Sequence record: LR588166.1 | Length of the DNA stretch: 64,000 nucleotides | Direction: 5' to 3' (one strand) | In this document: positions 3,303 through 48,544 of the stretch, one piece after another | Layout: every line of letters begins with the position of its first letter | How positions within the stretch are numbered: position 1 is the stretch's first letter | Notes under the pieces: generated by a model | Told to the model about the DNA's origin: nothing | Seen by the model: only the letters and a program-made list of their open reading frames with translations | Database searches by the model: none | Position numbers and translations under genes: made by a program

Positions 3303-3332
3303 TTGACAAAAAATAATAATTAAAAATATAAT
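3303..3332 (+). promoter_or_regulatory. sigma70 promoter
   Basis: TTGACA-18-TATAAT. Confidence 0.7.
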
Positions 3333-3739: not shown

Positions 3740-4051
3740 ATGTATGTATATGTAGTCCACGGAATAGTCAATACAGGCGTTGAGACTAATATTTGTGATA
3801 TAGAACGTTACGTTACAGTTAACGACTTCCATGCTGTAGCAAAGTTTCTTAATTTTAAAGAACATATAGCAGCAAACCCAAACTTATATATACGATTAAT
3901 TACTACTGGATTGAATACTAAAAAGAACATATTAGAATTAAACTTATCGAAAAAAGAATATGTAGTATCGGGTTTTAGAGTTACATCAACTAATATAAAT
4001 GAATGCATTGAATATTACCTGTGTAGAAGGATATTTAAGTTACATGATTGA
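3740..4051 (+). CDS. hypothetical protein
   Basis: ATG 3740 lies 1 nt after the upstream stop; in frame with the 3707 ORF. Confidence 0.65.
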   Translation: MYVYVVHGIVNTGVETNICDIERYVTVNDFHAVAKFLNFKEHIAANPNLYIRLITTGLNTKKNILELNLSKKEYVVSGFRVTSTNINECIEYYLCRRIFKLHD

Positions 4052-4169
4052 ATTTATATTAAAATCCCTTTTATTAACTTCAGTTGTCAGTGTTGGCATA
4101 CTACTGATATTCATTATTATTTCACTGTTAATGTTTGGCTTAGCACCGATAGTTCCATTCCTTATTTAA
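4044..4169 (+). CDS. 41-aa membrane peptide (not in ORF track)
   Basis: MIEFILKSLLLTSVVSVGILLIFIIISLLMFGLAPIVPFLI; overlaps the upstream stop by 8 nt. Confidence 0.6.
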   Translation: MIEFILKSLLLTSVVSVGILLIFIIISLLMFGLAPIVPFLI

Positions 4170-4190
4170 TTTTAATTATTTGCAAGCAAA

Positions 4191-4217
4191 TGCAAATGCG
4201 AACAATTCTTATTATCC
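4191..4217. promoter_or_regulatory. Fur-box-like motif, copy 5 (extended)
   Basis: TGCAAATGCGAACAATTCTTATTATCC; reverse of 4197..4217 is 14/21 and includes GATAAT. Confidence 0.6.
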
Positions 4218-4383
4218 AGCAGGCCACTGTACCTAATCTTCGTTAGATAAAATCTATTAGAATCTACACAGTCCATTAAAACGTTCAATTGTACATGGTG
4301 GCCAGATCTGCATATACTACACACATGAAGCAAGCAAACAGCGCTTCATAAACAAACCCAAATACAGCTAGGAGTTCCAAATC

Positions 4384-4821
4384 ATGACCAAAGCAACCGT
4401 TACCGTCGAGCAATCCGCAATCAAACTGGTCCGCCGCAACCTGGAAGGGCACCGGCAAGCCCTGCTGCTGAACGGCGTCGAAGTAGGCAGCAGCGAAGCG
4501 TTCTACAAGACCAAAACCCAGCGCACCTGGTCGGCGAAGATCGACGCCAACATCAACGGCAAGGACATCGTCCTCGAACAGAAAGGTGTGTTCAGTGCGA
4601 TCCGGATCGCCCGGGCGATGGAACAAGCAATCCTGTTCATCCTGACCGACGGCAAAGAAGGCTCCGAGATGCCGGCTAGCACGCTGAGCAAGGAAGAACA
4701 AGCCCACAACCTGGTCAAGGCAGTAGTCCAGGTCGCCGCCCACGCTGTCCAGTCCGGCGCCGCTGCCCCGGCGAAGAAAGGCAGCTCGAAGAAGCGCAAA
4801 GAAGCCCAGCCGGAAGCATAA
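4384..4821 (+). CDS. hypothetical protein, GC-rich, basic C-terminal tail (145 aa)
   Basis: AGGAG RBS; G/C-ending codons; terminator follows. Confidence 0.85.
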   Translation: MTKATVTVEQSAIKLVRRNLEGHRQALLLNGVEVGSSEAFYKTKTQRTWSAKIDANINGKDIVLEQKGVFSAIRIARAMEQAILFILTDGKEGSEMPASTLSKEEQAHNLVKAVVQVAAHAVQSGAAAPAKKGSSKKRKEAQPEA

Positions 4822-4834
4822 TCCGGACTACACC

Positions 4835-4860
4835 GAGAAAGCACCGAAAGGTGCTTTCTC
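4835..4860. terminator. intrinsic terminator hairpin
   Basis: GAGAAAGCACC-GAAA-GGTGCTTTCTC. Confidence 0.8.
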
Positions 4861-4872
4861 TATGACTGTTAA

Positions 4873-4926
4873 TAGCAAATATTCTTATTTACATCTAATC
4901 TGAAATAATAATAACTCTTATTTACA
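4873..4926. promoter_or_regulatory. two Fur-box-like motifs, copies 6 and 7
   Basis: TAGCAAATATTCTTATTTACA (12/21) and TAATAATAACTCTTATTTACA (14/21); the second overlaps a TTTACA -35. Confidence 0.5.
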
Positions 4927-4977
4927 AATCATACTGAATAGTGTATTTTACACACTAAACATTGTAGGTAATACAAA

Positions 4978-5466
4978 TTGAATATATTTGTGACTGACAC
5001 AAATCCTTATGTATGTGCCAAACATCATTGTGATGTTCATCTAAGAAAGATGATAGTAGAAACAGCACAATTGTTAAGCACTACTCATTATATAATAAAC
5101 GGATATACTCCTGCATATAAACCTACTCATAAAAATCACCCATGTGCCGTTTGGATTAGAGAAAGTTCAAATAACTATAAATGGACTTATGAACTTCTTA
5201 CAAGTCTTATAAATGAATTTGAATATAGATTTGACAAACAACATGCAACTAAAATTCACCTTTCGTCATTAAAAACTATACCAAAACTCCCTAATATAGA
5301 AAGAACAGAGTTTGTCTTAGTTATGCCAGACGAATTTAAAACAGATAATGTAACACATTCATATCAGATATATTTGAATAACAAATTTAAAGAATGGGCA
5401 TCGAGATCTAACAGACCCATTTATGCTACATATACAAAGACACCTAAACCATATTTTATTAGTTGA
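4978..5466 (+). CDS. denV: pyrimidine-dimer DNA glycosylase/endonuclease V family protein
   Basis: MNIFVTD..P..CA..HCD.H..KMIVETAQLLST and Y(K)PTH.NHPC..W motifs of the Pyr_excise family. Confidence 0.8.
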   Translation: MNIFVTDTNPYVCAKHHCDVHLRKMIVETAQLLSTTHYIINGYTPAYKPTHKNHPCAVWIRESSNNYKWTYELLTSLINEFEYRFDKQHATKIHLSSLKTIPKLPNIERTEFVLVMPDEFKTDNVTHSYQIYLNNKFKEWASRSNRPIYATYTKTPKPYFIS

Positions 5467-5482
5467 AATATAATAAAAATGA

Positions 5483-5511
5483 TTGACATGTACATAAGAT
5501 CATATTATGCT
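5483..5511 (+). promoter_or_regulatory. sigma70 promoter
   Basis: TTGACA-17-TATGCT. Confidence 0.75.
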
Positions 5512-5538
5512 GTATAAAACAGCAAGGAGTAGATATAC

Positions 5539-5772
5539 ATGTACCGCAAACTGAATACAAATCCGCGCCCAATGCCAAAAACAAAGGCAATTCCAACTAA
5601 ATTTGTCATTCAGTACACTGCACGGAATAAAGCAACAGAAAGTTTGTTCAAAAAAAGAACTATTACATTACATGCGTTTGGGCGTCTCGATGCACAAACA
5701 CTCCTATCGAAACATATCCGAAAAAATAATTTGGAATTAGGTGTAATTATTGATTTCGGTGAAACAGTTTAG
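5539..5772 (+). CDS. hypothetical basic protein (77 aa)
   Basis: AAGGAG RBS, own promoter and terminator. Confidence 0.8.
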   Translation: MYRKLNTNPRPMPKTKAIPTKFVIQYTARNKATESLFKKRTITLHAFGRLDAQTLLSKHIRKNNLELGVIIDFGETV

Positions 5773-5780
5773 TTAGTAAC

Positions 5781-5811
5781 AAAGGAAAGGGGAATTAATC
5801 CCCTTTCCTTT
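5781..5811. terminator. intrinsic terminator hairpin
   Basis: AAAGGAAAGGGGA-atta-atCCCCTTTCCTTT. Confidence 0.8.
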
Positions 5812-5823
5812 TATTAAGTCAAA

Positions 5824-5850
5824 TGCAAATACAAATTATTCTTATTTGCA
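5824..5850. promoter_or_regulatory. Fur-box-like motif, copy 8 (extended)
   Basis: TGCAAATACAAATTATTCTTATTTGCA; 13/21 for 5830..5850; a TTGTAT-17-TACACT promoter follows at 5865..5893. Confidence 0.55.
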
Positions 5851-5932
5851 CAGATCAGACCCTGTTGTATTCTCCATTACGTGGTGCTACACTGTAAACA
5901 GTTGCACAAAACCATAAGCAGGAGTGTTAAAA

Positions 5933-6229
5933 ATGAACCAAGTGAATAACACCGAAGAGATGGCGTACATCCGCAATCTGCTTCAGTCTGAAGATGCAGT
6001 AAAATACTTTGCTCGCAAAGTCAACGACCTCATCGGCAAAGAGGCATTCGAGCGGCTCCTTAACGGCTTGTCCTACGAGGAGAATGTGGCACTGAACCTG
6101 ATGATCGAAAACAATCTCGTTAGCTTGCACAGCGATGGCTTTGTCGGTATCAAGTTCGATCTCAAACTGGAAGACGTGCGGTCAGACGTCGACTTCACCG
6201 ACGAAGGCTTCGAGCTAGAGGAAGAGTGA
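5933..6229 (+). CDS. hypothetical acidic protein, GC-rich
   Basis: AGCAGGAG RBS before ATG 5933. Confidence 0.8.
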   Translation: MNQVNNTEEMAYIRNLLQSEDAVKYFARKVNDLIGKEAFERLLNGLSYEENVALNLMIENNLVSLHSDGFVGIKFDLKLEDVRSDVDFTDEGFELEEE

Positions 6230-6366
6230 TGGCTTACTACAATGAATTCTGAATACTGAAAAGTGCCTAAGAAGTAATTCCAGTTGTATCTAAAACACTA
6301 TATGTTATTATACATATAGTGTTTTTATTTCTTATAATTATATTCAATAATAATGGTAAAATATAT

Positions 6367-6690
6367 ATGATTGAAGTAATTAAATGCATTATATGTAATG
6401 AATCACCCCGACCCGGTGCATTTGCAGCATTTATTACTCAAATGCGTCAAGTAGTAAAACCTCATGCAACTATAACTAGTTGGAATATTCTGCCCGGCAT
6501 TAATGATGATCCAACTAGTTATATTCATGCATTCAGTATAAAATCAAAAACAGCATACGATATTAATCAAGCGATTACCTTATTACTAATGTCATTATAT
6601 AATGCTAGTGAATATAAGACTAACTACATACCTACTTCGTTTAAAGACTATGAATCTACAATAAAGCATTTATCTAAGATCAAACAATAG
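6367..6690 (+). CDS. hypothetical protein with N-terminal CxxC
   Basis: In frame with the 6319 ORF; start uncertain. Confidence 0.55.
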   Translation: MIEVIKCIICNESPRPGAFAAFITQMRQVVKPHATITSWNILPGINDDPTSYIHAFSIKSKTAYDINQAITLLLMSLYNASEYKTNYIPTSFKDYESTIKHLSKIKQ

Positions 6691-6754
6691 CCAGTTGCAT
6701 ATTTACAAATATACATGTATGCTAATATGTATACACAATCATGAGTACAATATC

Positions 6755-6910
6755 ATGACAAAAGAAATTGCTTTTACTGAAGGATTAAAAGCAGGCGCTC
6801 AAATAAAAGAAGGCAAAGCTATCCTAACTGACTTCTTTCGATATTTCAATTCCTTACCAACTAATATGAGAACTTCTTTTATTATCGGTATCAAAACCGG
6901 TAGGAACTAA
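6755..6910 (+). CDS. small hypothetical protein
   Basis: TTGCAT-17-TATGCT promoter at 6695..6723 places the start at ATG 6755. Confidence 0.6.
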   Translation: MTKEIAFTEGLKAGAQIKEGKAILTDFFRYFNSLPTNMRTSFIIGIKTGRN

Positions 6911-6997
6911 TAAGCATATTAATTTTCATATTTTGGTAGACAAAGGTACTCACTGGATGCATACTGTATACATACAGAACATACGGAGTACAAAGGG

Positions 6998-7267
6998 ATG
7001 GACGCGCACTGCCTGCTTAGCCTTATCGAAGACCTCCCTATAGCTGTCTTCGGTAGCACAATGGATATTGTTCATCGAGTCAATTTTGAAGCTCTGGACA
7101 ATGCCGCGCACACCGACGGAGTAAAAGTCCACGAAGATGGAACCAACCGTTATACGGACGCTTTTGTTGATTGTTGGCTCCGCAGCGTCGAAACAGTTTT
7201 GGCCTGTTGCGATTTTGTGACTGAGGATGCCGCTAAGTGGTATACCGAGCACGGTGTCAAGTTTTGA
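6998..7267 (+). CDS. hypothetical protein, GC-rich
   Basis: GGAG upstream; coding-like composition. Confidence 0.6.
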   Translation: MDAHCLLSLIEDLPIAVFGSTMDIVHRVNFEALDNAAHTDGVKVHEDGTNRYTDAFVDCWLRSVETVLACCDFVTEDAAKWYTEHGVKF

Positions 7268-7298
7268 CATCCTCTACCTGCGCCTGCAGATAAAAAGG

Positions 7299-7327
7299 TT
7301 GACGTAGACTAGCAATGGACACATAAT
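7299..7327 (+). promoter_or_regulatory. sigma70 promoter, duplicated at 8695
   Basis: GTTGACG-17-CATAAT-AATTACAAC. Confidence 0.75.
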
Positions 7328-7361
7328 AATTACAACACAACCAGCCCAGGAGGGCAAAACT

Positions 7362-7511
7362 ATGTGTAACATTCAATGCATGAACAGCAAAGCCGGCGAG
7401 TCCTACGCATGGATTTGGAGCGATAGTGATAGCGATATCTGCTACGAAGTCATCTTCCGGCATGGCCAAGTCCTCACCCAGGTTTGGCTCGGCTATGATA
7501 TCGTAGCCTAA
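7362..7511 (+). CDS. 49-aa hypothetical protein (not in ORF track)
   Basis: AGGAGGG RBS; MCNIQCMNSKAGESYAWIWSDSDSDICYEVIFRHGQVLTQVWLGYDIVA; hairpin 7521..7543 follows. Confidence 0.7.
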   Translation: MCNIQCMNSKAGESYAWIWSDSDSDICYEVIFRHGQVLTQVWLGYDIVA

Positions 7512-7560
7512 CACCAACTAAAGCCCCGTCCCAGGCGGGGCTTCACTGAAGGAAAGGATC

Positions 7561-7770
7561 ATGATCGAACAACTGAAAGACATGCTCGTAGCGCAACGCA
7601 TGCGCATGAACCAACTCGAAAAACTGCGCTACACCGGACGGGTCGCTAGCGAGTTGCATGCCCACGCCAGAGAATTGTGTGAAGCCTTGGAACTGGCAAT
7701 TGCAAATGCCCAGTGCCTGGAAATGCGCAAGTTCGAAGAAGCCGCCCTGCACGCCCTGTTCGCACAATAA
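7561..7770 (+). CDS. hypothetical helical protein (69 aa)
   Basis: AAGGA RBS; GC-rich codons. Confidence 0.75.
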   Translation: MIEQLKDMLVAQRMRMNQLEKLRYTGRVASELHAHARELCEALELAIANAQCLEMRKFEEAALHALFAQ

Positions 7771-7803
7771 CCCACCACGCACAACCCGACAAGGAAACCA
7801 ACC

Positions 7804-8295
7804 ATGAGCACTACCATCCCCGATTCGATTCATCCGAGTGACCTTCCCGAAATCAGCCAGGGGCTGGCTGATGGAACCTTCTTTGTCCGCCATTGGCTCA
7901 ATGGCAAGGAATACGCCTACGTCGATCTCGGCAAAAGCGCCGAGTTCACTGGAGAATGGGGCGAGTATGGGCTGGACGTGGACAGCGCCGTTAGCTATCG
8001 AGACGGAGCTTCGAACACGATCGCTATGGCTGAAGCTGGCAGCCCGATTGCCAAGCAAGCTATGGAGATCGGAGAAGGCGTATTCATTCCTTCTGTTCTG
8101 GAACTGGCTCTTCTGTTCTCAGCAAATCAAGCAGGCGAGCTGTCTGGTTTCGCAGATCGCTGGTACTGGTCGAGTTCGCAGTACTCCGCCTGCGGCGCCT
8201 TCCGCATGCATTTCGGTGATGGCGAGGCTAGTGTCGCCATCAAGAGCAGCGCCTGGTTGGTCCGCCCCGTCCGCAAGATTCTCATTCTTCAGTAA
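7804..8295 (+). CDS. DUF1566 (Lcl C-terminal, C-type-lectin-fold) protein
   Basis: IPSVLEL...WYWSSSQYSA..AF.M.F.DG......K.....VRPVR signature. Confidence 0.8.
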   Translation: MSTTIPDSIHPSDLPEISQGLADGTFFVRHWLNGKEYAYVDLGKSAEFTGEWGEYGLDVDSAVSYRDGASNTIAMAEAGSPIAKQAMEIGEGVFIPSVLELALLFSANQAGELSGFADRWYWSSSQYSACGAFRMHFGDGEASVAIKSSAWLVRPVRKILILQ

Positions 8296-8372
8296 TCTAG
8301 CCCCGGAGATAACACGATGAACCTGCACCTCTCCAAGCATTGTTTGCGCCAGTGCGCTACTAAGGAACAGTC

Positions 8373-8621
8373 ATGAGTATTGCAAGCTACCTCTTGTTGT
8401 CCACTATTGTCTTCAACAACAACACCTACGCTCGTTCGACGACAGTGGACACCATTGTGGTTCGTGACCTCAGCAAGGAAGACTGCGAGGCGCTCAAGCG
8501 TGAGCGCGAAGCAGTTGTGAAGAACATCCGGGCAAGGAACTTCGGTAGCTCTGGTGATACGAGCGGTATCGCCGTGGGCTTTTCCAAACACAGTTGCACA
8601 AAGATGGAGGGTACGAAATGA
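8373..8621 (+). CDS. hypothetical protein (82 aa)
   Basis: AAGGA RBS; hydrophobic N-terminus. Confidence 0.6.
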   Translation: MSIASYLLLSTIVFNNNTYARSTTVDTIVVRDLSKEDCEALKREREAVVKNIRARNFGSSGDTSGIAVGFSKHSCTKMEGTK

Positions 8622-8694
8622 CTCAACTGGCACCGGCGAGCAAACATTACTCGGAAGGTGCTAGCTGAACGACTGGCGGAACAATAAATAAAAG

Positions 8695-8723
8695 TTGACG
8701 TGTCCGGGCGAAGGGCGCATAAT
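8695..8723 (+). promoter_or_regulatory. sigma70 promoter, second copy
   Basis: GTTGACG-17-CATAAT-AATTACAAC. Confidence 0.75.
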
Positions 8724-8762
8724 AATTACAACGCAACACAGCAAGCCCCGGAGGGCGCAACC

Positions 8763-8963
8763 ATGAGCCAGATCGTAGATGTCAAGCAAATTGCAATTGA
8801 TGCAAACCGTCGCCCTGCCTACAATGCGGTCATGGTGCGCTGGTTGATGCAGGAAGCTGAAATGCACCGTAGCTGTGGGCGCACCGCTACCCTGTTCTGC
8901 ATCGTTCGCAACCGCCCCGACGGCACACAGCGCCAGCTCGTGCAGCTTGTGGCTAGCGAGTAA
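8763..8963 (+). CDS. hypothetical protein (66 aa)
   Basis: GGAGGG RBS before ATG 8763; in frame with the 8700 ORF. Confidence 0.7.
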   Translation: MSQIVDVKQIAIDANRRPAYNAVMVRWLMQEAEMHRSCGRTATLFCIVRNRPDGTQRQLVQLVASE

Positions 8964-8993
8964 CCTCAATCACCCTATGCCCGGGAGGCCGTC

Positions 8994-9158
8994 ATGAATG
9001 CTGCACTGGCCAGACTTCAGAACGAACGTTGCATGTTACTTCGCCGGATGCTTTGCAGCAAATGGCACGGATTCTGTTTTGCAGGTCACCCCTGGGCAGA
9101 ACAAACCCGCAATCTGCACAACGAATCCAAGTGCATCCGAGAACATTACAGTAAGTAA
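8994..9158 (+). CDS. 54-aa hypothetical protein (not in ORF track)
   Basis: GGGAGG RBS; MNAALARLQNERCMLLRRMLCSKWHGFCFAGHPWAEQTRNLHNESKCIREHYSK. Confidence 0.65.
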   Translation: MNAALARLQNERCMLLRRMLCSKWHGFCFAGHPWAEQTRNLHNESKCIREHYSK

Positions 9159-9192
9159 TCCAAACCCACTGGATCTTACTGAGGATAAGATA

Positions 9193-9297
9193 ATGACCTA
9201 CGCAGAACTAATAAAGAAACTACATAACATAGAAGCTGGTCATTATCTTTCCAATAATGAAGTTAAGTTTCAAAACACAGGCAAGCAGGAGAACTAA
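9193..9297 (+). CDS. 34-aa hypothetical peptide
   Basis: GAGGA RBS before ATG; 3' end of the 8998 ORF. Confidence 0.45.
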   Translation: MTYAELIKKLHNIEAGHYLSNNEVKFQNTGKQEN

Positions 9298-9298
9298 A

Positions 9299-9595
9299 AT
9301 GAATTGCGAACATTTTTTCCTCAGTGCAGTAAAAGAACTTCTGTCCCTGTACCACATTAAGAGTACTATTCAACCGTCTTCTGATAACCTCGAAGAATTG
9401 GTAGTAGTTATTACCGATACTGCTTTTGGTACTATCAGATATGTTGGCAATAACACTGGATCAGTTATGTGTTATACTATGGGCGGTAATTACCCGTTCT
9501 ATGACACTGAGTGTTATTCCAACCGAACTATGATAGATTGTGTTATGTTGATATCAGTTTGGTATTCAATGTTCCCGACATTCGATAATAAGTAA
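9299..9595 (+). CDS. hypothetical protein
   Basis: AGCAGGAG RBS before ATG 9299. Confidence 0.75.
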   Translation: MNCEHFFLSAVKELLSLYHIKSTIQPSSDNLEELVVVITDTAFGTIRYVGNNTGSVMCYTMGGNYPFYDTECYSNRTMIDCVMLISVWYSMFPTFDNK

Positions 9596-9851
9596 TATAA
9601 TGGTTGCCCTATATAGTGTATGATGTTAGTTGTATACTATATAGAATAATTCTATTAACTGGGAGGGATTAATAAAAATATTTTCTTGACAATAGCAGGT
9701 ATAGGATAATTCTATTATACTGAAAATTGTTATAGAAAAATATAGTTGACAAATTTTGAAAGTGATGAATTCCAACGCCGGGTGGCTGTAAGCTGAGACG
9801 GTTGACATTCGGTGAGTGGTGGATTGTTACGCGGGTAGATTTTGAAATTCA

Positions 9852-10052
9852 CCGTCTATAGGTTCACTTACAAGTCACTTTCATTTATAAGTCATTTCCG
9901 TCTATAGGTTCACTTACAAGTCACTTTCATTTATAAGTCATTTCCGTCTATAGGTTCACTTACAAGTCACTTTCATTTATAAGTCATTTCCGTCTATAGG
10001 TTCACTTACAAGTCACTTTCATTTATAAGTCATTTCCGTCTATAGGTTCACT
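9852..10052. repeat. perfect 46-bp tandem repeat, 4 copies plus 17 bp
   Basis: CCGTCTATAGGTTCACTTACAAGTCACTTTCATTTATAAGTCATTT at 9852, 9898, 9944, 9990; partial at 10036. Confidence 0.95.
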
Positions 10053-20537: not shown

Positions 20538-23500
20538 CTACGGAGTTAATCCACTTCCAGGTCTGTTTTGTAAGAATATAGCCCAGGGAGTTGTACTTAG
20601 AGCAAGTCCACCGTTATTATTTTCCCATATGTACTTACCTGTATCTTCTTGTTCTTGTTTATACGAACCGTCAAATACCCTAGTATATAGCGGCACAGTT
20701 GTATCTCCGTTTGTTCCGGTATATACAGATGTCCCTAATGATCCCCTAGTCAATCCATGTAATTTATTACCGCGTTTATATAAGAATTCTATACGTTCTG
20801 TTCCTATCCAAACTACACCGGGTTTACTACTAGACGGATCTACTATTGCAGATGCATCTACTAACTCTATAGATTTATCTGTAAGTTTTAATGGTTTAGC
20901 TAATCTAGTGCTATAATAATCAGAAATCCTAACATAGTGTGTTTCGCCCATTTCATCTAGGTGTACCCTAAAACTTAGTGGTTTGGCAGGATATTTGATT
21001 ACAACATTATCACCTTGCATTGTAACTGGATTTATGAAATTGTGTTGTTCATTGAATACAGCTACCCACGAATTATTAACAATATCGGTTACTTTTTGAA
21101 TGTTTGTTTCAGTCCAATCGATTCGTATAATATCGCCTGCGTTGAGAGTACCCTTATATACTACTAATAACTTAGCATTATCACCTGTTATATTTGTGAA
21201 TTCTATAGTGTAGTCTTTGTCTTTAGTTTTACTAATTCCATTTATATAAACTGTCTCTCCTACAAAATTACGTATACTAGTATCTACAGTGAAAAGTTTT
21301 GTATTTGTATACAACATTTCTTTACTCTTACGAGTATATAAATTATTAGACACACTGATCATTCTTTTGTTAGCAGCAACAAACATGTCTATTGTCTGCA
21401 ACTTATATTCAGATGTAGTAACAGAAGTTATGTTATATTTGTTCATTACATACGAAACATAATCATCTAACTTCATTATAGAATAAGATTGATATTTAAC
21501 TGTAATTACAGTTCCTGCACTCGGTGCAATTTCAAAATTAATAACAAGTTCAGGAGTAATTCCACTATTATCTACAACTACTGTATAGCCATACATTGCA
21601 ACTCCACTCGAATAAACACCCTGGACTCTGTTGGGGAGAATATTCATACCTGTATGTATCATAGTATCTACACCATTTGCAGTAATATCTACGAACTTGT
21701 ATGTAAGTTGTCCCGATGCCTGTGCAACTACTTCGTCAGGATTAGCAATAGTTGGCATATCTATAGGTAGTAGATACACACTATCTGCATTTTCTGGAGA
21801 ATCTATGCTTGGATCCCAAGCAAATGTATCCCATGTGTTTATATCTTTATTTTGTTTTGTATTTCTTAAATCTACAGTTATGTATCCTTGAGTATTATCC
21901 CTTACTACTGAATTAGTATCAAACCTATAATCGTTAGCTACAGTAGTTTGTGAAGTATAATTATCTTTATAGACTACTGATATAATATCACCTGTACTGA
22001 AACTAGTAGGATATGCAATGACTACGGTATTAATGCCGTTGTTATCTATATTAAACTTCAATTTGTCTTCAGTATTAGGATCTCCGTTTATAACTAACCC
22101 TATTATGTCCTGTAACACTATTTTTTCAGTTAATACTATTTTAACAAACGGATTCGAAGTATCTGTATTAGTAACAACATACTGAACTTCTGTAGTTTTC
22201 GCATTAGAATCTACAATAATAACCATATTCTCTGTAGGAGATACTAATGCTTGTTCTTCCGGGATTCCTTCTCTTACGTTAGTATCTTCAAAATATGCAC
22301 CATCTATTATAGGCTTACTAGTGTCACTGTTAAATGTATTAGTAACAGGATTAAAAGTAAACACTATTTCGTCACCTTCTACTGCGCCAGGAACTTCTAT
22401 AGATGTAAAATTAGAACCTTTTGTAGCAGTGTATTGTGTAGAAGATCCATTTAGTGTTACGCCAGTTATATCTACTACATATCGTATGACAAATGTTGTT
22501 TTTCCTTCCGATATAACTGTTGCACTTGTTTCAGTATAATTAGGAGTAATAACATACGTAGCAGTAGAGGCATCCCATGCATATTCGTCCCATTTTGTAC
22601 TATCCCACGGTCTGCTAAATATGTACTCAAAATCTTTAGCATCTATTACCTTACCTTCATAGTCACACCCATATTCGTCACCGAAACGTTCGTTGAATTG
22701 GAATAAAACATCTCTCTCGCCAGCTGAACTTTCGTATAGACGTTCAGTAAACGAACTGTATGGATATGAACCGTTTATGGGTGCGGCACTTAAAATATCC
22801 CGTTGCAGGTCAGTTTGATATAAGATATATCTTCCAGCGGCGCCAGAATATTGTAAGTATTCAGTCCATAATTGACGATTACCTTCTTGTATTGTGCCCG
22901 GTATACCCCAACGTAATTGACCCCACTTAGGAATACCCCAACCGCCTGCGATTTTACCAGCTGGATCTATTGCTAAATCAAATATAGGTTTAAGCACTTT
23001 ACCGGGTTGTCTAGCATTATATTCTAACCTCATTTCCTCTAACGGAGTTTGGGTGAATTCTGTACCAGAATATAATTTTATTTTAGATCCTATTTTAATA
23101 AGAGTATTCGATTTAAATGTTACTTGTAGATAGCCATTCTCGTTTATTTCTACATCATATTGCTCTTTAGTAATAGTTTTTCCATCTACCTTAATTTTCC
23201 AAACAGATTTTATATCAGTGTAGTTTACTATTATTACATCACCTGCATCAGGAGTAGAAGGAAGTATTATAAATGTTGCATTTAATATTGTAGTGAATGT
23301 GTAACCTTCTATTTCTTGCCCATTTATTGTTACAGATGTTATTCTAGAAATATCTTTATTAGCACCTAATTGATATTGAGAAATTCCATCTAATGCTATA
23401 AATTCATCATTAGGAGTATTTGCTATAAGAACTACTTGACCACCGGTACCGATAAATGTTTGGTCGCCTAAGTCTATATAATTCGGTTTAGTTATGTAAC

Positions 23501-46079: not shown

Positions 46080-46577
46080 TTATTTACTCAGCTGTTTTAC
46101 TTTCTCTTTATTCTCTTCTGTCCAGAAATTATTCCAACTACAGAATACCCAACCCTTATAATCTATACTATTATTTACTTTAATACCGGTTTTTTCTTCA
46201 AATACTACCCATTTGCCTTGCCGCGTTATTTTTATAAAAATAATATTAAAATCACCCTCGCTAGCAGTATCGCGTACCTGTGATATCCATGTATCTAACT
46301 GTTTGCACTCTCCTTCGAACAACGAAGTAAATGAAAATTTTGCATACGATTTACATTCAGAATTAAAATGTTCCCATGTATCCGGAGGGAAAATATCACC
46401 TTTATAGGATTTGATTTGATTATTACCTAGTGATGTTTTTCTGACAGAATTTTGTCCTCCTATAAAGGCACCTGAATGTGCTGTTCTGGTAAAGGGTTCG
46501 TTGTAAAATGAGGTAAGATCTTTTGCTACATCTCGTTCCCAGCTACTACCTTTAATTTTACTTTTCGATCCAGACAT
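46080..46577 (-). CDS. Holliday junction resolvase-like PD-(D/E)XK nuclease
   Basis: SK.KG..WER.VAK.L ... GDI.PP ... ECK. Confidence 0.75.
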   Translation of the reverse strand: MSGSKSKIKGSSWERDVAKDLTSFYNEPFTRTAHSGAFIGGQNSVRKTSLGNNQIKSYKGDIFPPDTWEHFNSECKSYAKFSFTSLFEGECKQLDTWISQVRDTASEGDFNIIFIKITRQGKWVVFEEKTGIKVNNSIDYKGWVFCSWNNFWTEENKEKVKQLSK

Positions 46578-46708
46578 GTTTTGTTAACCTTTTATATACC
46601 TGTTAAATTTTACATTATTTAGTTAATTTTATACCCATATAATACTGTCGAGATAAATATGTGTGTAGATAACTTATAGCATTATTTTTAACGATTTTAG
46701 TACAATGG

Positions 46709-46737
46709 TTGACAGTATTAATGTCGTATGCTATAAT
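46709..46737 (+). promoter_or_regulatory. consensus sigma70 promoter with no downstream ORF
   Basis: TTGACA-17-TATAAT with TG extended -10. Confidence 0.85.
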
Positions 46738-46743
46738 CCGCAA

Positions 46744-47649
46744 CATAATAAAACTAAAGGACGTATGTAACAAAACAGACGTTCTCCTAAGTGTTTTAAA
46801 GTTTTTGCTTAGGAAGACCCAGTTGTATGTTTAAAGGGTGAACGGTAACGGGCATTCTTGTTTAAGACTAGTTCTTATGAAGACATTGGCAACTAACATA
46901 GCAGCTTTGTTCCATCATTGGATATTGGTAGTAGAAACTATCCCCATCGTGCCTTTACTGTAGTACCGTTAGAGACGGAGATAACGCAGGAAAAAAGGTT
47001 ATTTAAATTATGATTTTGGGTGCTGCAGAACACTTTCGTAAACAAAAGGAATATAGTTTACGTATACACAACGGGAACGGGAAAAAGCTTTTTAAGCAAA
47101 AACGAGTCCCTGGTAATTGGTGTTTAACGGGAGTGACGTCCCAAATGTTATTCATCGATTAACACTGTAAGAAGGTTGTAAGGGTTATTGTGTTCGAAGT
47201 GGTTTACACAACTGTTCTTCCTACATTTATGTACAGAAGTGTAAACGAAAGGATGTTGCTCTGGTAGAAAAAGATCAACGTACTTTATGACACTATCCTT
47301 GTGACATATGTACTTGTACCAACAACAGCCGCAGGTTACGGATATGGTATTACAAACTGTACTGCGGTTCCGGGAGTTGAAAGTGGATGTTAGCTTAGGT
47401 GGCTGTTTGCTTAATTATAATGTTTAATTTAGGCAATATAAGCGTCGGGTGAGGCTTTCGTAGGTTGCGTGTTTATGCTACGGTGTAAATGGGCTAGACT
47501 ACTGGCGCATACATGAGTATTGTAGGATTGGCGCTTTAATAAAGAAATTTGTTAAAGTTTGAGTTTAGCTCCCCGCTCATTAGCAATAAACGTTGCTAGT
47601 CGATAGTATACCCACGCCTAAATAATGCCGTCATTGTTTAGTTTTTTTT
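46744..47649 (+). ncRNA. candidate ~900-nt large structured non-coding RNA
   Basis: Perfect promoter; no ORF of 60 aa or more in six frames; many helices; 5'/3' closing helix 46750-58/47637-45; ends in a T-tract. Confidence 0.6.
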
Positions 47650-47654
47650 AAAAA

Positions 47655-47939
47655 ATATAATTGTCAATTATATGTCGTACGCATCTACCCCGAAAAGGGG
47701 TAGATGTTTATGACTTTCGTTTACACTCATGTCATAATCAGTACACGCCATTTTAGGCCATTCTACATCAATACACTGCTTCTAGCAGTGTATTGGACAT
47801 ACAAAATAATCTTAAATTATATCAAATTTGTTTAATTACTTTAATTTTGTTACTTTAGTAATTTGTATTTTGTTTATATGAGTTGTAGTTTACGAAAACG
47901 AATATAAACAAAATACATATGTGAACTGTAGTTCACATA
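47655..47939. repeat. cluster of perfect inverted repeats
   Basis: Stems of 8, 10, 12, 16 and 9 bp. Confidence 0.85.
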
Positions 47940-48091
47940 CTTACTAACGTTGTATATTACGGTAATTCTATAAAATATCTCTATATAATTATAAACGTTT
48001 TATGGCATACTACGACTGAACGAAATTGAAAATTAACTAGAGATTTAATTAGATAAATAATATTGTAAAAATTGTATAGAGGTATACATCA

Positions 48092-48544
48092 ATGAACGAT
48101 TACACACATTACACAGAGGAAGATTTCATATTTTTAGCATATGATTTAAATACTCAGCTTATAAATGATGGATATCCTGACGCTGCTGTAAAATTTATTA
48201 CTAATCAGTTTATTTTAGAGCATAGACATCCTGACGAAATAAAACGTTGTATAGGATGTAATTCTAAAATGTACGAAGATGTTATTGCTACTAAGAGAAA
48301 TTTATCTGGTAAATCGCATTGCAGACATTGCGAATCGAAACTTAGTATGTATAAGGAAGTTGTTAAGGAAGTAGCAAATACAACACAAATACTTCGCATA
48401 CCAGAAAAACATTTAAATTCAGTTAAACGATTAATTAGAATATATAATGAGCAAAACAAAACTAGTGCATATCAGAGTATATTAGTTAAAACAAAGAAAC
48501 TTAACACAGGAGTTTCTAAAAAGTCAAAAAGAAAGGGACGTTAA
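48092..48544 (+). CDS. hypothetical protein with CxxC...CxxC zinc ribbon
   Basis: AGAGGT RBS; GATAAATA at 48052; CIGC and CRHC. Confidence 0.75.
   Translation: MNDYTHYTEEDFIFLAYDLNTQLINDGYPDAAVKFITNQFILEHRHPDEIKRCIGCNSKMYEDVIATKRNLSGKSHCRHCESKLSMYKEVVKEVANTTQILRIPEKHLNSVKRLIRIYNEQNKTSAYQSILVKTKKLNTGVSKKSKRKGR

Follow-up and report, generated by a model that had tools for sequence, protein, structure and literature searches.

A probable gene for a large structured non-coding RNA outside Rfam in T4-like jumbo phages

What occupies a stretch of 1.5 kb without any sizeable open reading frame (ORF) in an otherwise gene-dense phage genome? The stretch in question (46578–48091) lies within 64,000 nucleotides (nt) of sequence record LR588166.1, which we call the window and whose positions are used throughout; it is 100% identical in Pseudomonas phage vB_PaeM_MIJ3 and 99.2–99.9% identical in ten other records of the genus Wroclawvirus, among them PA5oct (99.5%). 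A preliminary description, made from the letters alone, had proposed that it encodes a new or divergent giant structured RNA. Our analysis arrives at a similar answer, to which we give a probability of roughly 80%: positions 46744–47649 of the + strand carry a self-contained gene whose product is a large, structured non-coding RNA (ncRNA) of a family outside Rfam. For its mode of operation, scaffold-type action in trans is the likeliest proposal, at somewhat less than even odds. Five lines of evidence point to an RNA gene, namely the lack of an Rfam match, the lack of a coding signal, covariation among homologues, conserved promoters and terminators, and covariance models that cross-find members of the family.

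Coding signal and predicted transcript limits

The longest ORF overlapping 46578–48091 encodes 52 amino acids (aa) and stops are abundant in all six frames, in agreement with the initial remark that no ORF of at least 60 aa is present. The same remark held the stretch to be richer in G and C than its surroundings, and G+C content is indeed 0.36–0.43 over 46700–47600 against 0.27–0.30 in the flanks, with a + strand GC skew of +0.14 to +0.33 at the RNA stretch. Ten ORF pieces taken from the stretch had no PHROG or Pfam match, and no protein similarity was found at the locus in any frame. When the window was compared with L046, an uncultivated phage contig that carries a homologue, 210 substitutions over 525 well-aligned positions were split 70/70/70 between the codon phases, which marks the region as non-coding; nearly every window ORF is disrupted in L046 by frame-shifting indels or stops.

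Public records treat this DNA in different ways. It is unannotated in the MIJ3 record (46578–48091), while the PA5oct record, in which the ORF-free stretch corresponds to 75667–77179 (PA5oct position = window position + 29,089), places four coding sequences (CDSs) of 38–50 aa there, gp142–145, equivalent to window positions 46615–46746, 46831–46947, 47010–47162 and 47308–47427. The records of Cassandra, Deifobo, Ettore, Paride and PAC2 each contain six 'hypothetical proteins' within the RNA gene. All of these are very probably not genes, a reading that corrects the public annotation of the four tiny proteins of PA5oct and of the six in each of the other five records. A further small peptide, rich in Gly and Cys (47301–47393), was considered and rejected: some of its changes relative to L046 look synonymous, but the ORF is missing in L049, L053 and L051, and the same segment forms part of a covarying region (helix Hb and a hairpin, described below), which counts against it.

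The predicted gene begins behind a perfect extended sigma-70 promoter, TTGACA-17-TGcTATAAT (46709–46737, +), with a likely start near 46744. This promoter is unique in the window, as had been claimed; the sole other perfect −35/−10 pair in the 64 kb (3303–3332) has an 18-nt spacer and no TG, and lies inside the terminal repeat. Homologues carry TTGACA or TTGATA together with TATAAT, TATACT or TATAGT at the equivalent place. The late-type motif that had been pointed out at 46652, GATAAATA (46652–46659, +), is also present, 92 nt upstream of the predicted sigma-70 start, and may be the analogue of a T4-type late promoter. As a word it is not enriched in the window (9 copies against 9.6 expected); 7–8 of the 9 copies lie 20–60 nt (one of them ~130 nt) upstream of gene starts in the correct orientation, including those of both hub-flanking genes and of the 150-aa gene that follows the RNA gene (copy at 48052), and all five close homologues, L046, L049, L053 and L051 among them, have the motif upstream of the RNA. 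Such placement is the pattern that a T4-type late promoter would show. Judging from these motifs, the RNA is possibly expressed both early and late.

At its other end the gene had been described as finishing in a T-tract. Eight T are indeed found at 47642–47649 after a 10-bp hairpin, but the single end has to be replaced by two tandem terminators. The first, T1 (47618–47649, +), is an A+U-rich 10-bp hairpin at 47618–47641, CUAAAUAAUG-CCGU-CAUUGUUUAG, followed by U8 (fold z = −3.9), and its equivalent in L046 reads GCCGGUUUA...UAAACCGGC followed by U6; a terminator scan overlooked T1 because its stem has 2 G–C pairs only. The second, T2 (47682–47706, +), starts 33 nt after T1 and consists of CAUCUACCCC-GAAAA-GGGGUAGAUG followed by UUUAU (−23.5 kcal/mol, z = −7.3), with a G+C-rich hairpin at the same place in every homologue. 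The RNA gene (46744–47649, +) would thus yield a transcript of ~906 nt to T1, or of ~965 nt if read through to T2 (ending at ~47710). Each of the five close homologues has a sigma-70-like promoter plus a G+C-rich terminator, and predicted RNA lengths among the homologues range from ~576 to ~1007 nt.

A family in one genomic slot and its covarying core

A DNA search of 50,697 phage records returned only 11 Wroclawvirus genomes, which at an identity of at least 99% are too similar to be of use for covariation, and the next isolated relatives beyond this genus share 25–30% protein identity. The homologues described here come from ~15 distinct uncultivated phage contigs. The preliminary description had proposed looking for homologous loci between resolvase and gp26-like genes, and loci between the resolvase and hub genes were found, with covariation between them. 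Among 43 IMG/VR loci reached via the resolvase, ORF-free stretches recurred at this place; neither blastn nor nhmmer found them similar to the window gap. A large protein collection contained homologues of the resolvase with identities of 70%, 64% and 53%, which led to contigs L046, L049 and L051, whose ORF-free stretches share colinear blastn blocks with the window gap; L053 was retrieved from IMG/VR by a block-derived DNA pattern; and homologues of the hub protein led to L057–L065, including L064 with a 27-nt block 96% identical to the window. Blastn blocks connect the window with L046, L049, L053, L051 and L064, and L064 also has blocks in common with two further groups of ORF-free elements.

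A stricter first pattern for the conserved block B (defined below) had 0 matches in IMG/VR, and a looser one, GATNNNGCTCTGNNNGAAAMAGA, matched 30 loci. Seventeen of these lie inside long ORFs and are chance matches, while 12 new loci and L053 are ORF-free with the full block B context. Wherever the flanks of a new locus are long enough to tell, gp47/gp46(-resolvase) stands on one side of the element and hub(-portal) on the other, with the element directed at the hub gene, as in the window. A pattern blind to synteny thus returned, among these ORF-free loci, only syntenic ones. Within the family slot the element is convergent with the baseplate-hub gene, and the hub proteins of this clade are 35–56% identical to that of the window. 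Other searches added no homologue: a metagenome scan with the hub protein had no match, a pattern for block A, run against metagenomes and GTDB, matched nothing but a conserved CDS without relation to the RNA and an operator-like palindrome of Firmicutes, and two more hub-derived contigs either ended at the hub gene (L073) or were incomplete and without a match (L074).

No motif of the family is better conserved than block B (47248–47274, +; AAAGGAUGUUGCUCUGGUAGAAAAAGA), which contains an invariant mini-hairpin of UCU (47260–47262) and AGA (47272–47274); it is 96% identical to L064 over 27 nt and was also examined by nhmmer. We define the family by block B (AAAGGAU-NNN-GCUCUG-loop-GAAAAAGA) with a core helix, Hb, to a downstream xCAAC-NNN-R, and the window agrees with this definition: in its Hb (47254–47327, +), 47254–47258 (UGUUG) pairs with 47323–47327 (CAACA, within the conserved ACCAACAACAG). 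With a variable spacer of 2–125 nt cut out of the alignment, Hb is fully paired in 13 of 13 distinct sequences, two of its pairs occur as all four Watson–Crick types, and both-side changes amount to 16 cells, against 3.8 ± 1.6 in shuffles (0/500) and 0–2 when the partner was slid. Model R2, built from nine natural sequences with the window left out, matches the window at 47243–47336 (E = 4e-5), as well as L046, L076 and the gaps of L008, L011 and L014 (helix UAAUG/CAUUA). An alternative pairing of block B with a 5'-end GCAACAU, suggested by alifold, was inconsistent in L049, L053 and L051 and has been superseded by Hb.

The block A domain (46927–47020, +) comprises helix H1 (46927–46932/46937–46942), the long-range helix H2 (46943–46946/47017–47020, CCCA/UGGG) and helix H3 (46952–46956/46994–46998) around a variable insert. 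Across 5 sequences and 13 pairs, 96.8% of cells are paired and 6 of the 13 pairs have changed on both sides, against 0–1 when the partner was slid; none of 500 shuffles reached the score. Model R1, built from five block A sequences, matches L087 (E = 5.5e-10; H1 GGUGU/ACACC, H3 CCCAC/GUGGG) and, weakly, the L076 group (E = 0.02; H1 GGUUGG/CCAACC, H2 CGCA/UGCG), and these compensations are new, in sequences outside the R1 training set. The window itself scores 87.8 bits with the block A model at 46917–47031, being one of its five training sequences. Block A is present in part of the family only, namely the five close homologues, L087 and the L076 group.

A third element, the block C hairpin NNGG-[AAGAUGSUGYCCG]-CCNN, lies ~130 nt after block B and has covarying outer pairs around a conserved 13-nt loop; it is clear in L049, L053, L051, L064, L087, L079, L097, L093, L099 and L078, and degenerate in L046. 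Alignments were partly hand-built around the conserved blocks; when five or eight RNAs were aligned globally over their full length with MAFFT, the result was unreliable outside these blocks. As judged from these alignments, the case for significant covariation in two separate domains, block A and Hb, is strong. The conserved core consists of block A and of block B with its helix Hb, joined in most members by the block C hairpin, and is surrounded by a fast-evolving periphery. We regard the family as real: structured ncRNA genes of 0.6–1.0 kb, found across a broad clade of T4-like jumbo phages. The two strands also differ, the predicted fold of the + strand of the window (−247 kcal/mol) being far more stable than that of the − strand (−187 kcal/mol), and G exceeds C on the sense strand of all 13 members.

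Six helices that are in register between the window and L046 comprise 40 pairs, all retained, with 10 double changes against 0–2 in slid controls; because these helices were picked with both sequences in view, the 40-pair count is biased towards structure. The 5' hairpin UCCUAAG/CUUAGGA (46785–46814, +) has a conserved UUUUAAAGUUUUU loop, around which L046 has GUAGG/CCUAC, a comparison read by eye because an indel shifts the alignment register. The hairpin CGUAAAC/GUUUACG (47037–47062, +), also seen in the local fold, becomes AAUCGAG/CUCGAUU in L046, with every pair changed. These two and a hairpin at 46759–46784 are fully re-coded in L046, though indel-shifted in the alignment. Further along, GUUUACAC/GUGUAAAC (47202–47246, +) is replaced by GUUUAUAA/UUAUAGAC, with two double changes and one wobble change; GCCGCAG..UACGG / CUGUA..CUGCGGU (47328–47368, +; local fold z = −2.7) corresponds to GCAUCUG/CAGAUGU, with three double changes; and (U)AGCAA/UUGCU(A) (47581–47598, +; fold z = −4.7) corresponds to UGCAA-UAGACG-UUGCA, its closing A–U having turned into U–A.

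The preliminary description had listed ten helices found by eye, and all of them exist in the sequence. Four are backed by compensatory changes (46785–46791/46808–46814, 47037–47043/47056–47062, 47202–47209/47239–47246 and 47581–47586/47593–47598), and two lie within window-specific insertions that offer no counterpart for comparison (46966–46969/46975–46978 and 47129–47132/47139–47142). The others are probably wrong: the supposed closing helix 46750–46758/47637–47645 clashes with the terminator hairpin 47618–47641, helix 47324–47330/47401–47407 clashes with the covarying 47254–47258/47323–47327 and with the hairpin 47328–47368, and 47427–47434/47616–47623 and its neighbour (47442–47450) clash with the T1 hairpin. 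One might speculate that, by competing with T1, helix 47427–47434/47616–47623 could set the level of read-through to T2.

Two further groups of ORF-free elements of 0.5–0.7 kb were observed in the same slot, with within-group identities of 70–87%. One is conserved in L057, L059, L061, L062 and L063 (~7659–8300, −), and the other, in L003, L006, L007, L044 and L009 (+, after the resolvase gene), shows 28 compensated pairs of its own (RNAalifold). Neither group is matched by models R1 or R2, and both are tied to the family solely by blocks of 60–90 nt in L064, L093 and L099. In L067 (Agrobacterium phage Atu_ph07), 1.1 kb between the hub gene and gp46 (5829–6935) holds only four tiny annotated ORFs (40–112 aa); this gap, to which R1 and R2 gave no match, may be another over-annotated non-coding element in the same synteny. 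Free-standing GIY-YIG (SegE-like) homing-endonuclease genes adjoin the RNA in L053 (1281–1694), L057 (7621–8109, −), L093 and L079/L097; that of L053 was recognised by Pfam PF19835 and the others were read by eye from the motif 'YVY...G..YFG'. By analogy with the seg genes near T4 tRNA genes, these neighbours suggest that the RNA gene may be a conserved homing target. Near the slot, a conserved ORF of ~59 aa with coding-like substitutions lies just downstream of the hub gene in L003 (7053–7231, −) and equivalently in L006, L007, L044 and L009, and the portal gene of L063 (135–3392) carries an intein (Pfam Intein_splicing inside Portal_T4).

In the window, the left neighbour of the RNA gene is a PD-(D/E)XK 'resolvase' gene (46080–46577, −; Pfam PF24608), and the right neighbour is the 150-aa gene (48092–48544, +), the product of which has two CxxC pairs (zinc-ribbon-like) and no relatives outside Wroclawvirus among 5.8 billion proteins searched. 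The intervening DNA downstream of the RNA (47700–48090) is very A+T-rich (G+C 0.20–0.27) and forms many hairpins, among them a long A+U-rich one at 47861–47920 (strand unassigned) with ACGAAAACGAA at its tip, 160 nt past T2. ACGAAG-type hairpins (tip ACGAA(A/G)CGAA) follow the RNA in nearly all relatives (L049, L064, L093, L059, L063 and the L003 group), some of them lacking block B, and the hairpin at 47861–47920 may represent a distinct conserved element that acts in regulation or termination. Elsewhere in the window, a region at ~4000–10000 has a G+C content of 0.39–0.46 against ~0.32, only short, overlapping ORFs and ~1-kb gaps without annotated CDS, with no tRNA and no Rfam match; its end coincides with the inner edge of the 39-kb terminal repeat (PA5oct 39080, window 9991).

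Possible roles and rival explanations

Under the interpretation that we favour, host RNA polymerase would transcribe the RNA from the first minutes of infection via the sigma-70 promoter, and the T4-type late machinery would do so again from GATAAATA at 46652. The RNA would then be freed as a discrete, stable molecule of ~0.9 kb, in which the unpaired, invariant nucleotides of the core would be contacted by a conserved protein, of the phage or of the host, or would self-assemble. That it acts in trans as a folded scaffold or as the core of a ribonucleoprotein (RNP) is a tentative proposal, favoured because invariant unpaired nucleotides are framed by covarying helices, as in RNase P, signal recognition particle RNA (SRP), OLE, GOLLD and ROOL; we give less weight to regulation by base pairing or to a leader sequence. 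A bolder and rather doubtful version would make the RNA the catalytic or scaffolding core of an essential RNP of T4-like jumbo phages at the junction of replication/recombination and morphogenesis, for example through a step of origin firing, genome processing or assembly that depends on RNA. If true, this would define a new class of viral 'housekeeping' RNA with a status comparable to that of RNase P or pRNA.

Several points weigh against a stand-alone structured RNA of this kind. The PA5oct RNA sequencing paper lists four ncRNAs, none at this locus, where its authors put gp142–145 (PMC7318152). Both ends of the RNA are predictions from sequence. Only ~15 distinct sequences were available, and covariation was judged by shuffles and slid controls; the helices shared by the window and L046 were called with both sequences in view, and the Hb alignments were spacer-trimmed. 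The whole-molecule fold is of modest significance (−247 kcal/mol, z = −2.3, for the + strand and −187 kcal/mol, z = −0.9, for the − strand, on 20 shuffles), and the pairs of the single-sequence minimum free energy fold of the window show 22 double changes relative to L046 against 8–16 in shifted controls, an approximately twofold excess. Block C has no convincing copy in the window. The scaffold or RNP mechanism, finally, is argued by analogy alone.

The main rival, which we consider unlikely, is a primer RNA for an origin of replication: host RNA polymerase would start at the sigma-70 promoter, and its folded, G-rich product would form a persistent R-loop, which phage RNase H would process to prime the leading strand. 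ColE1 RNA II and the T4 oriF(uvsY) and oriG transcripts prime replication in this way. A primer would fit the sole consensus extended −10 promoter in 64 kb, the excess of G over C in the sense strand of 13 of 13 family members, the very A+T-rich, hairpin-rich stretch after the RNA (47700–48090), and a locus that always adjoins the gp46/gp47/resolvase recombination and replication genes; T4 oriF adjoins hub genes 25/26, and a structured primer would likewise covary. Gene orientation and cumulative GC skew also change within ~5 kb of the locus, but the skew switch coincides with the switch in gene orientation and is therefore not independent evidence for an origin. Set against these points, two conserved intrinsic terminators would free the transcript before it reaches the A+T-rich stretch, and a conserved late-type promoter is unexpected at an early origin. 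The G excess is modest (0.04–0.19), and many members show no enrichment of GGG over CCC runs; the locus contains neither iterons nor multi-copy repeats, and no antisense regulator was seen, the promoter/terminator scan giving no antisense promoter/terminator pair, of the kind used in ColE1-type control, that stood out.

We hold it to be less likely still that the RNA is an anti-defence decoy or sponge, that is, an abundant early structured RNA that titrates or mimics the target of a host defence or RNA-binding factor, in the manner of pseudo-ToxI, RNA anti-CRISPRs and phage tRNA clusters. The immediate-early consensus promoter would suit such a role, as would the small conserved core with its fast-evolving periphery and the clustering of homing-endonuclease genes around the gene (L053, L057, L093, L079, L097), as around T4 tRNA genes. 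However, strict synteny in the core replication/morphogenesis region does not resemble accessory anti-defence loci, nor does occurrence throughout a broad clade whose hosts presumably differ greatly; no binding motif is repeated within the RNA, and GGA motifs occur at about their expected frequency (hand count).

A coding or cis-regulatory function, either as several very small genes (gp142–145) or as a leader or attenuator for the 150-aa gene, is largely refuted and retains only a slight chance. Besides the four CDSs placed by the PA5oct curators, its attractions are that the AUG within the conserved block A motif UAUGAUYUUGGGUG opens ORFs of 7–50 aa in those homologues in which it was translated, with a purine-rich stretch upstream, and that T1 could attenuate, given the competing long-range helix 47427–47434/47616–47623. 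Yet the even substitution split, the disruption of ORFs in L046 and the lack of family matches speak against coding, as do the peptides following 'MILG', which are unrelated among homologues, and the changes in the block A motif, which covary with H2. A leader role is unlikely because the downstream gene of the window is genus-specific, while the RNA is widespread, and this gene has its own GATAAATA at 48052. Moreover, the next gene is convergent with the RNA in L053, which excludes a leader at least there, and appears to be convergent in L064 too. The least credible alternative is a neutral spacer, or what is left of a decayed protein gene or mobile element, that folds by chance. It could draw on the gain and loss of homing-endonuclease genes at the locus in relatives and on a length varying from ~0.6 to 1.0 kb, but promoter and terminators are conserved, no frame has protein similarity, and blocks and pairing are kept with compensatory changes across lineages whose hub proteins have diverged to the extent given above, a covariation that refutes this explanation unless the counts are alignment artefacts.

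Large structured RNAs without a known function are, to our knowledge, a rarity, nearly all of them coming from Firmicutes, from their prophages, or from metagenomes without a culturable system. The present RNA belongs to a cultivated and genetically tractable pair (PA5oct or MIJ3 on P. aeruginosa PAO1) with existing RNA sequencing data, and its fixed core position, strong early promoter and small covarying core make the role of giant phage RNAs directly testable. The sequence motifs and covariance-model alignments can be used to find more members.

Comparison with known RNAs

The Rfam search that had been proposed at the outset gave, with Rfam 15, no match at gathering score in the 64-kb window and four chance-level matches at E ≤ 10 in 46400–48150; the RNA regions of 12 homologous loci had no match, even at E ≤ 10. 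With ARAGORN predicting 0 genes in the window and the Rfam models negative, the first impression of no recognisable tRNA, tmRNA, RNase P or intron core also holds, group I and group II introns included. Literature searches did not find a description of this RNA. The nearest published neighbours are ncRNA001–004 of PA5oct, transcribed ORF-free stretches from the same phage species, which lie at PA5oct 8263–8498, 21951–22401, 103065–103368 and 246116–246734 (Lood et al. 2020, PMC7318152). All four being elsewhere, the present locus is undescribed as an RNA; in contrast to the family examined here, no structure or conservation is reported for them, and the text of that paper does not mention gp142–145 (PMC7318152).

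Resemblances to RNase P RNA, to CsrB and to an anti-Shine–Dalgarno sequence were considered and set aside as short. The first concerns P4 of RNase P RNA: a purine-rich GAAAG leads into a long-range helix, the 3' strand follows an A-rich motif, and the periphery evolves fast. We regard it as superficial: the Rfam models are negative, only 5–125 nt separate the two strands, an S-domain is lacking and the conserved regions come in a different order. With phi29 pRNA, the present RNA shares the nature of a phage structural RNA with an early promoter and a gene a few kb from the portal gene, but pRNA is 174 nt long and has no sequence or structural similarity to it (Rfam negative); T4-type terminase motors, so far as we know, need no RNA. 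ColE1 RNA II and the T4 oriF and oriG transcripts resemble it in having a sigma-70-type promoter, a G-rich structured transcript of 0.5–1 kb and adjoining replication/recombination genes, and differ from it in that the present RNA has tandem terminators and a late-type promoter; no hybrid-forming G-cluster was seen in it.

GOLLD and ROOL offer the closest parallel in kind. They are large ornate bacterial and phage RNAs that form RNA-only cages, and come mainly from Firmicutes, from samples of rumen and lakes, and from prophages, where they lie near tRNA genes. The window does not match the Rfam models of GOLLD, ROOL, OLE, HEARO or raiA, and since every model-based test fails, the RNA is no member of GOLLD or ROOL. 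What it has in common with them, in kind and not by homology, is that the gene is large, independent and carried by phages and that many helices of its RNA are conserved; GOLLD and ROOL are described as multi-helix ncRNAs of 0.6–0.8 kb, often stand-alone genes of phages or prophages, with a conserved core and a variable periphery (10.1101/2024.12.08.627333). Unlike them, the present RNA has a constant place in the core genome of T4-like jumbo phages that are strictly lytic, with sigma-70 and late-type promoters. We rate it as a new family, absent from Rfam, of the known kind of large ornate phage RNAs, and what appears to set it apart among these is its occurrence in lytic jumbo phages of Gram-negative hosts, as a syntenic core gene with early and late promoters predicted from their motifs.

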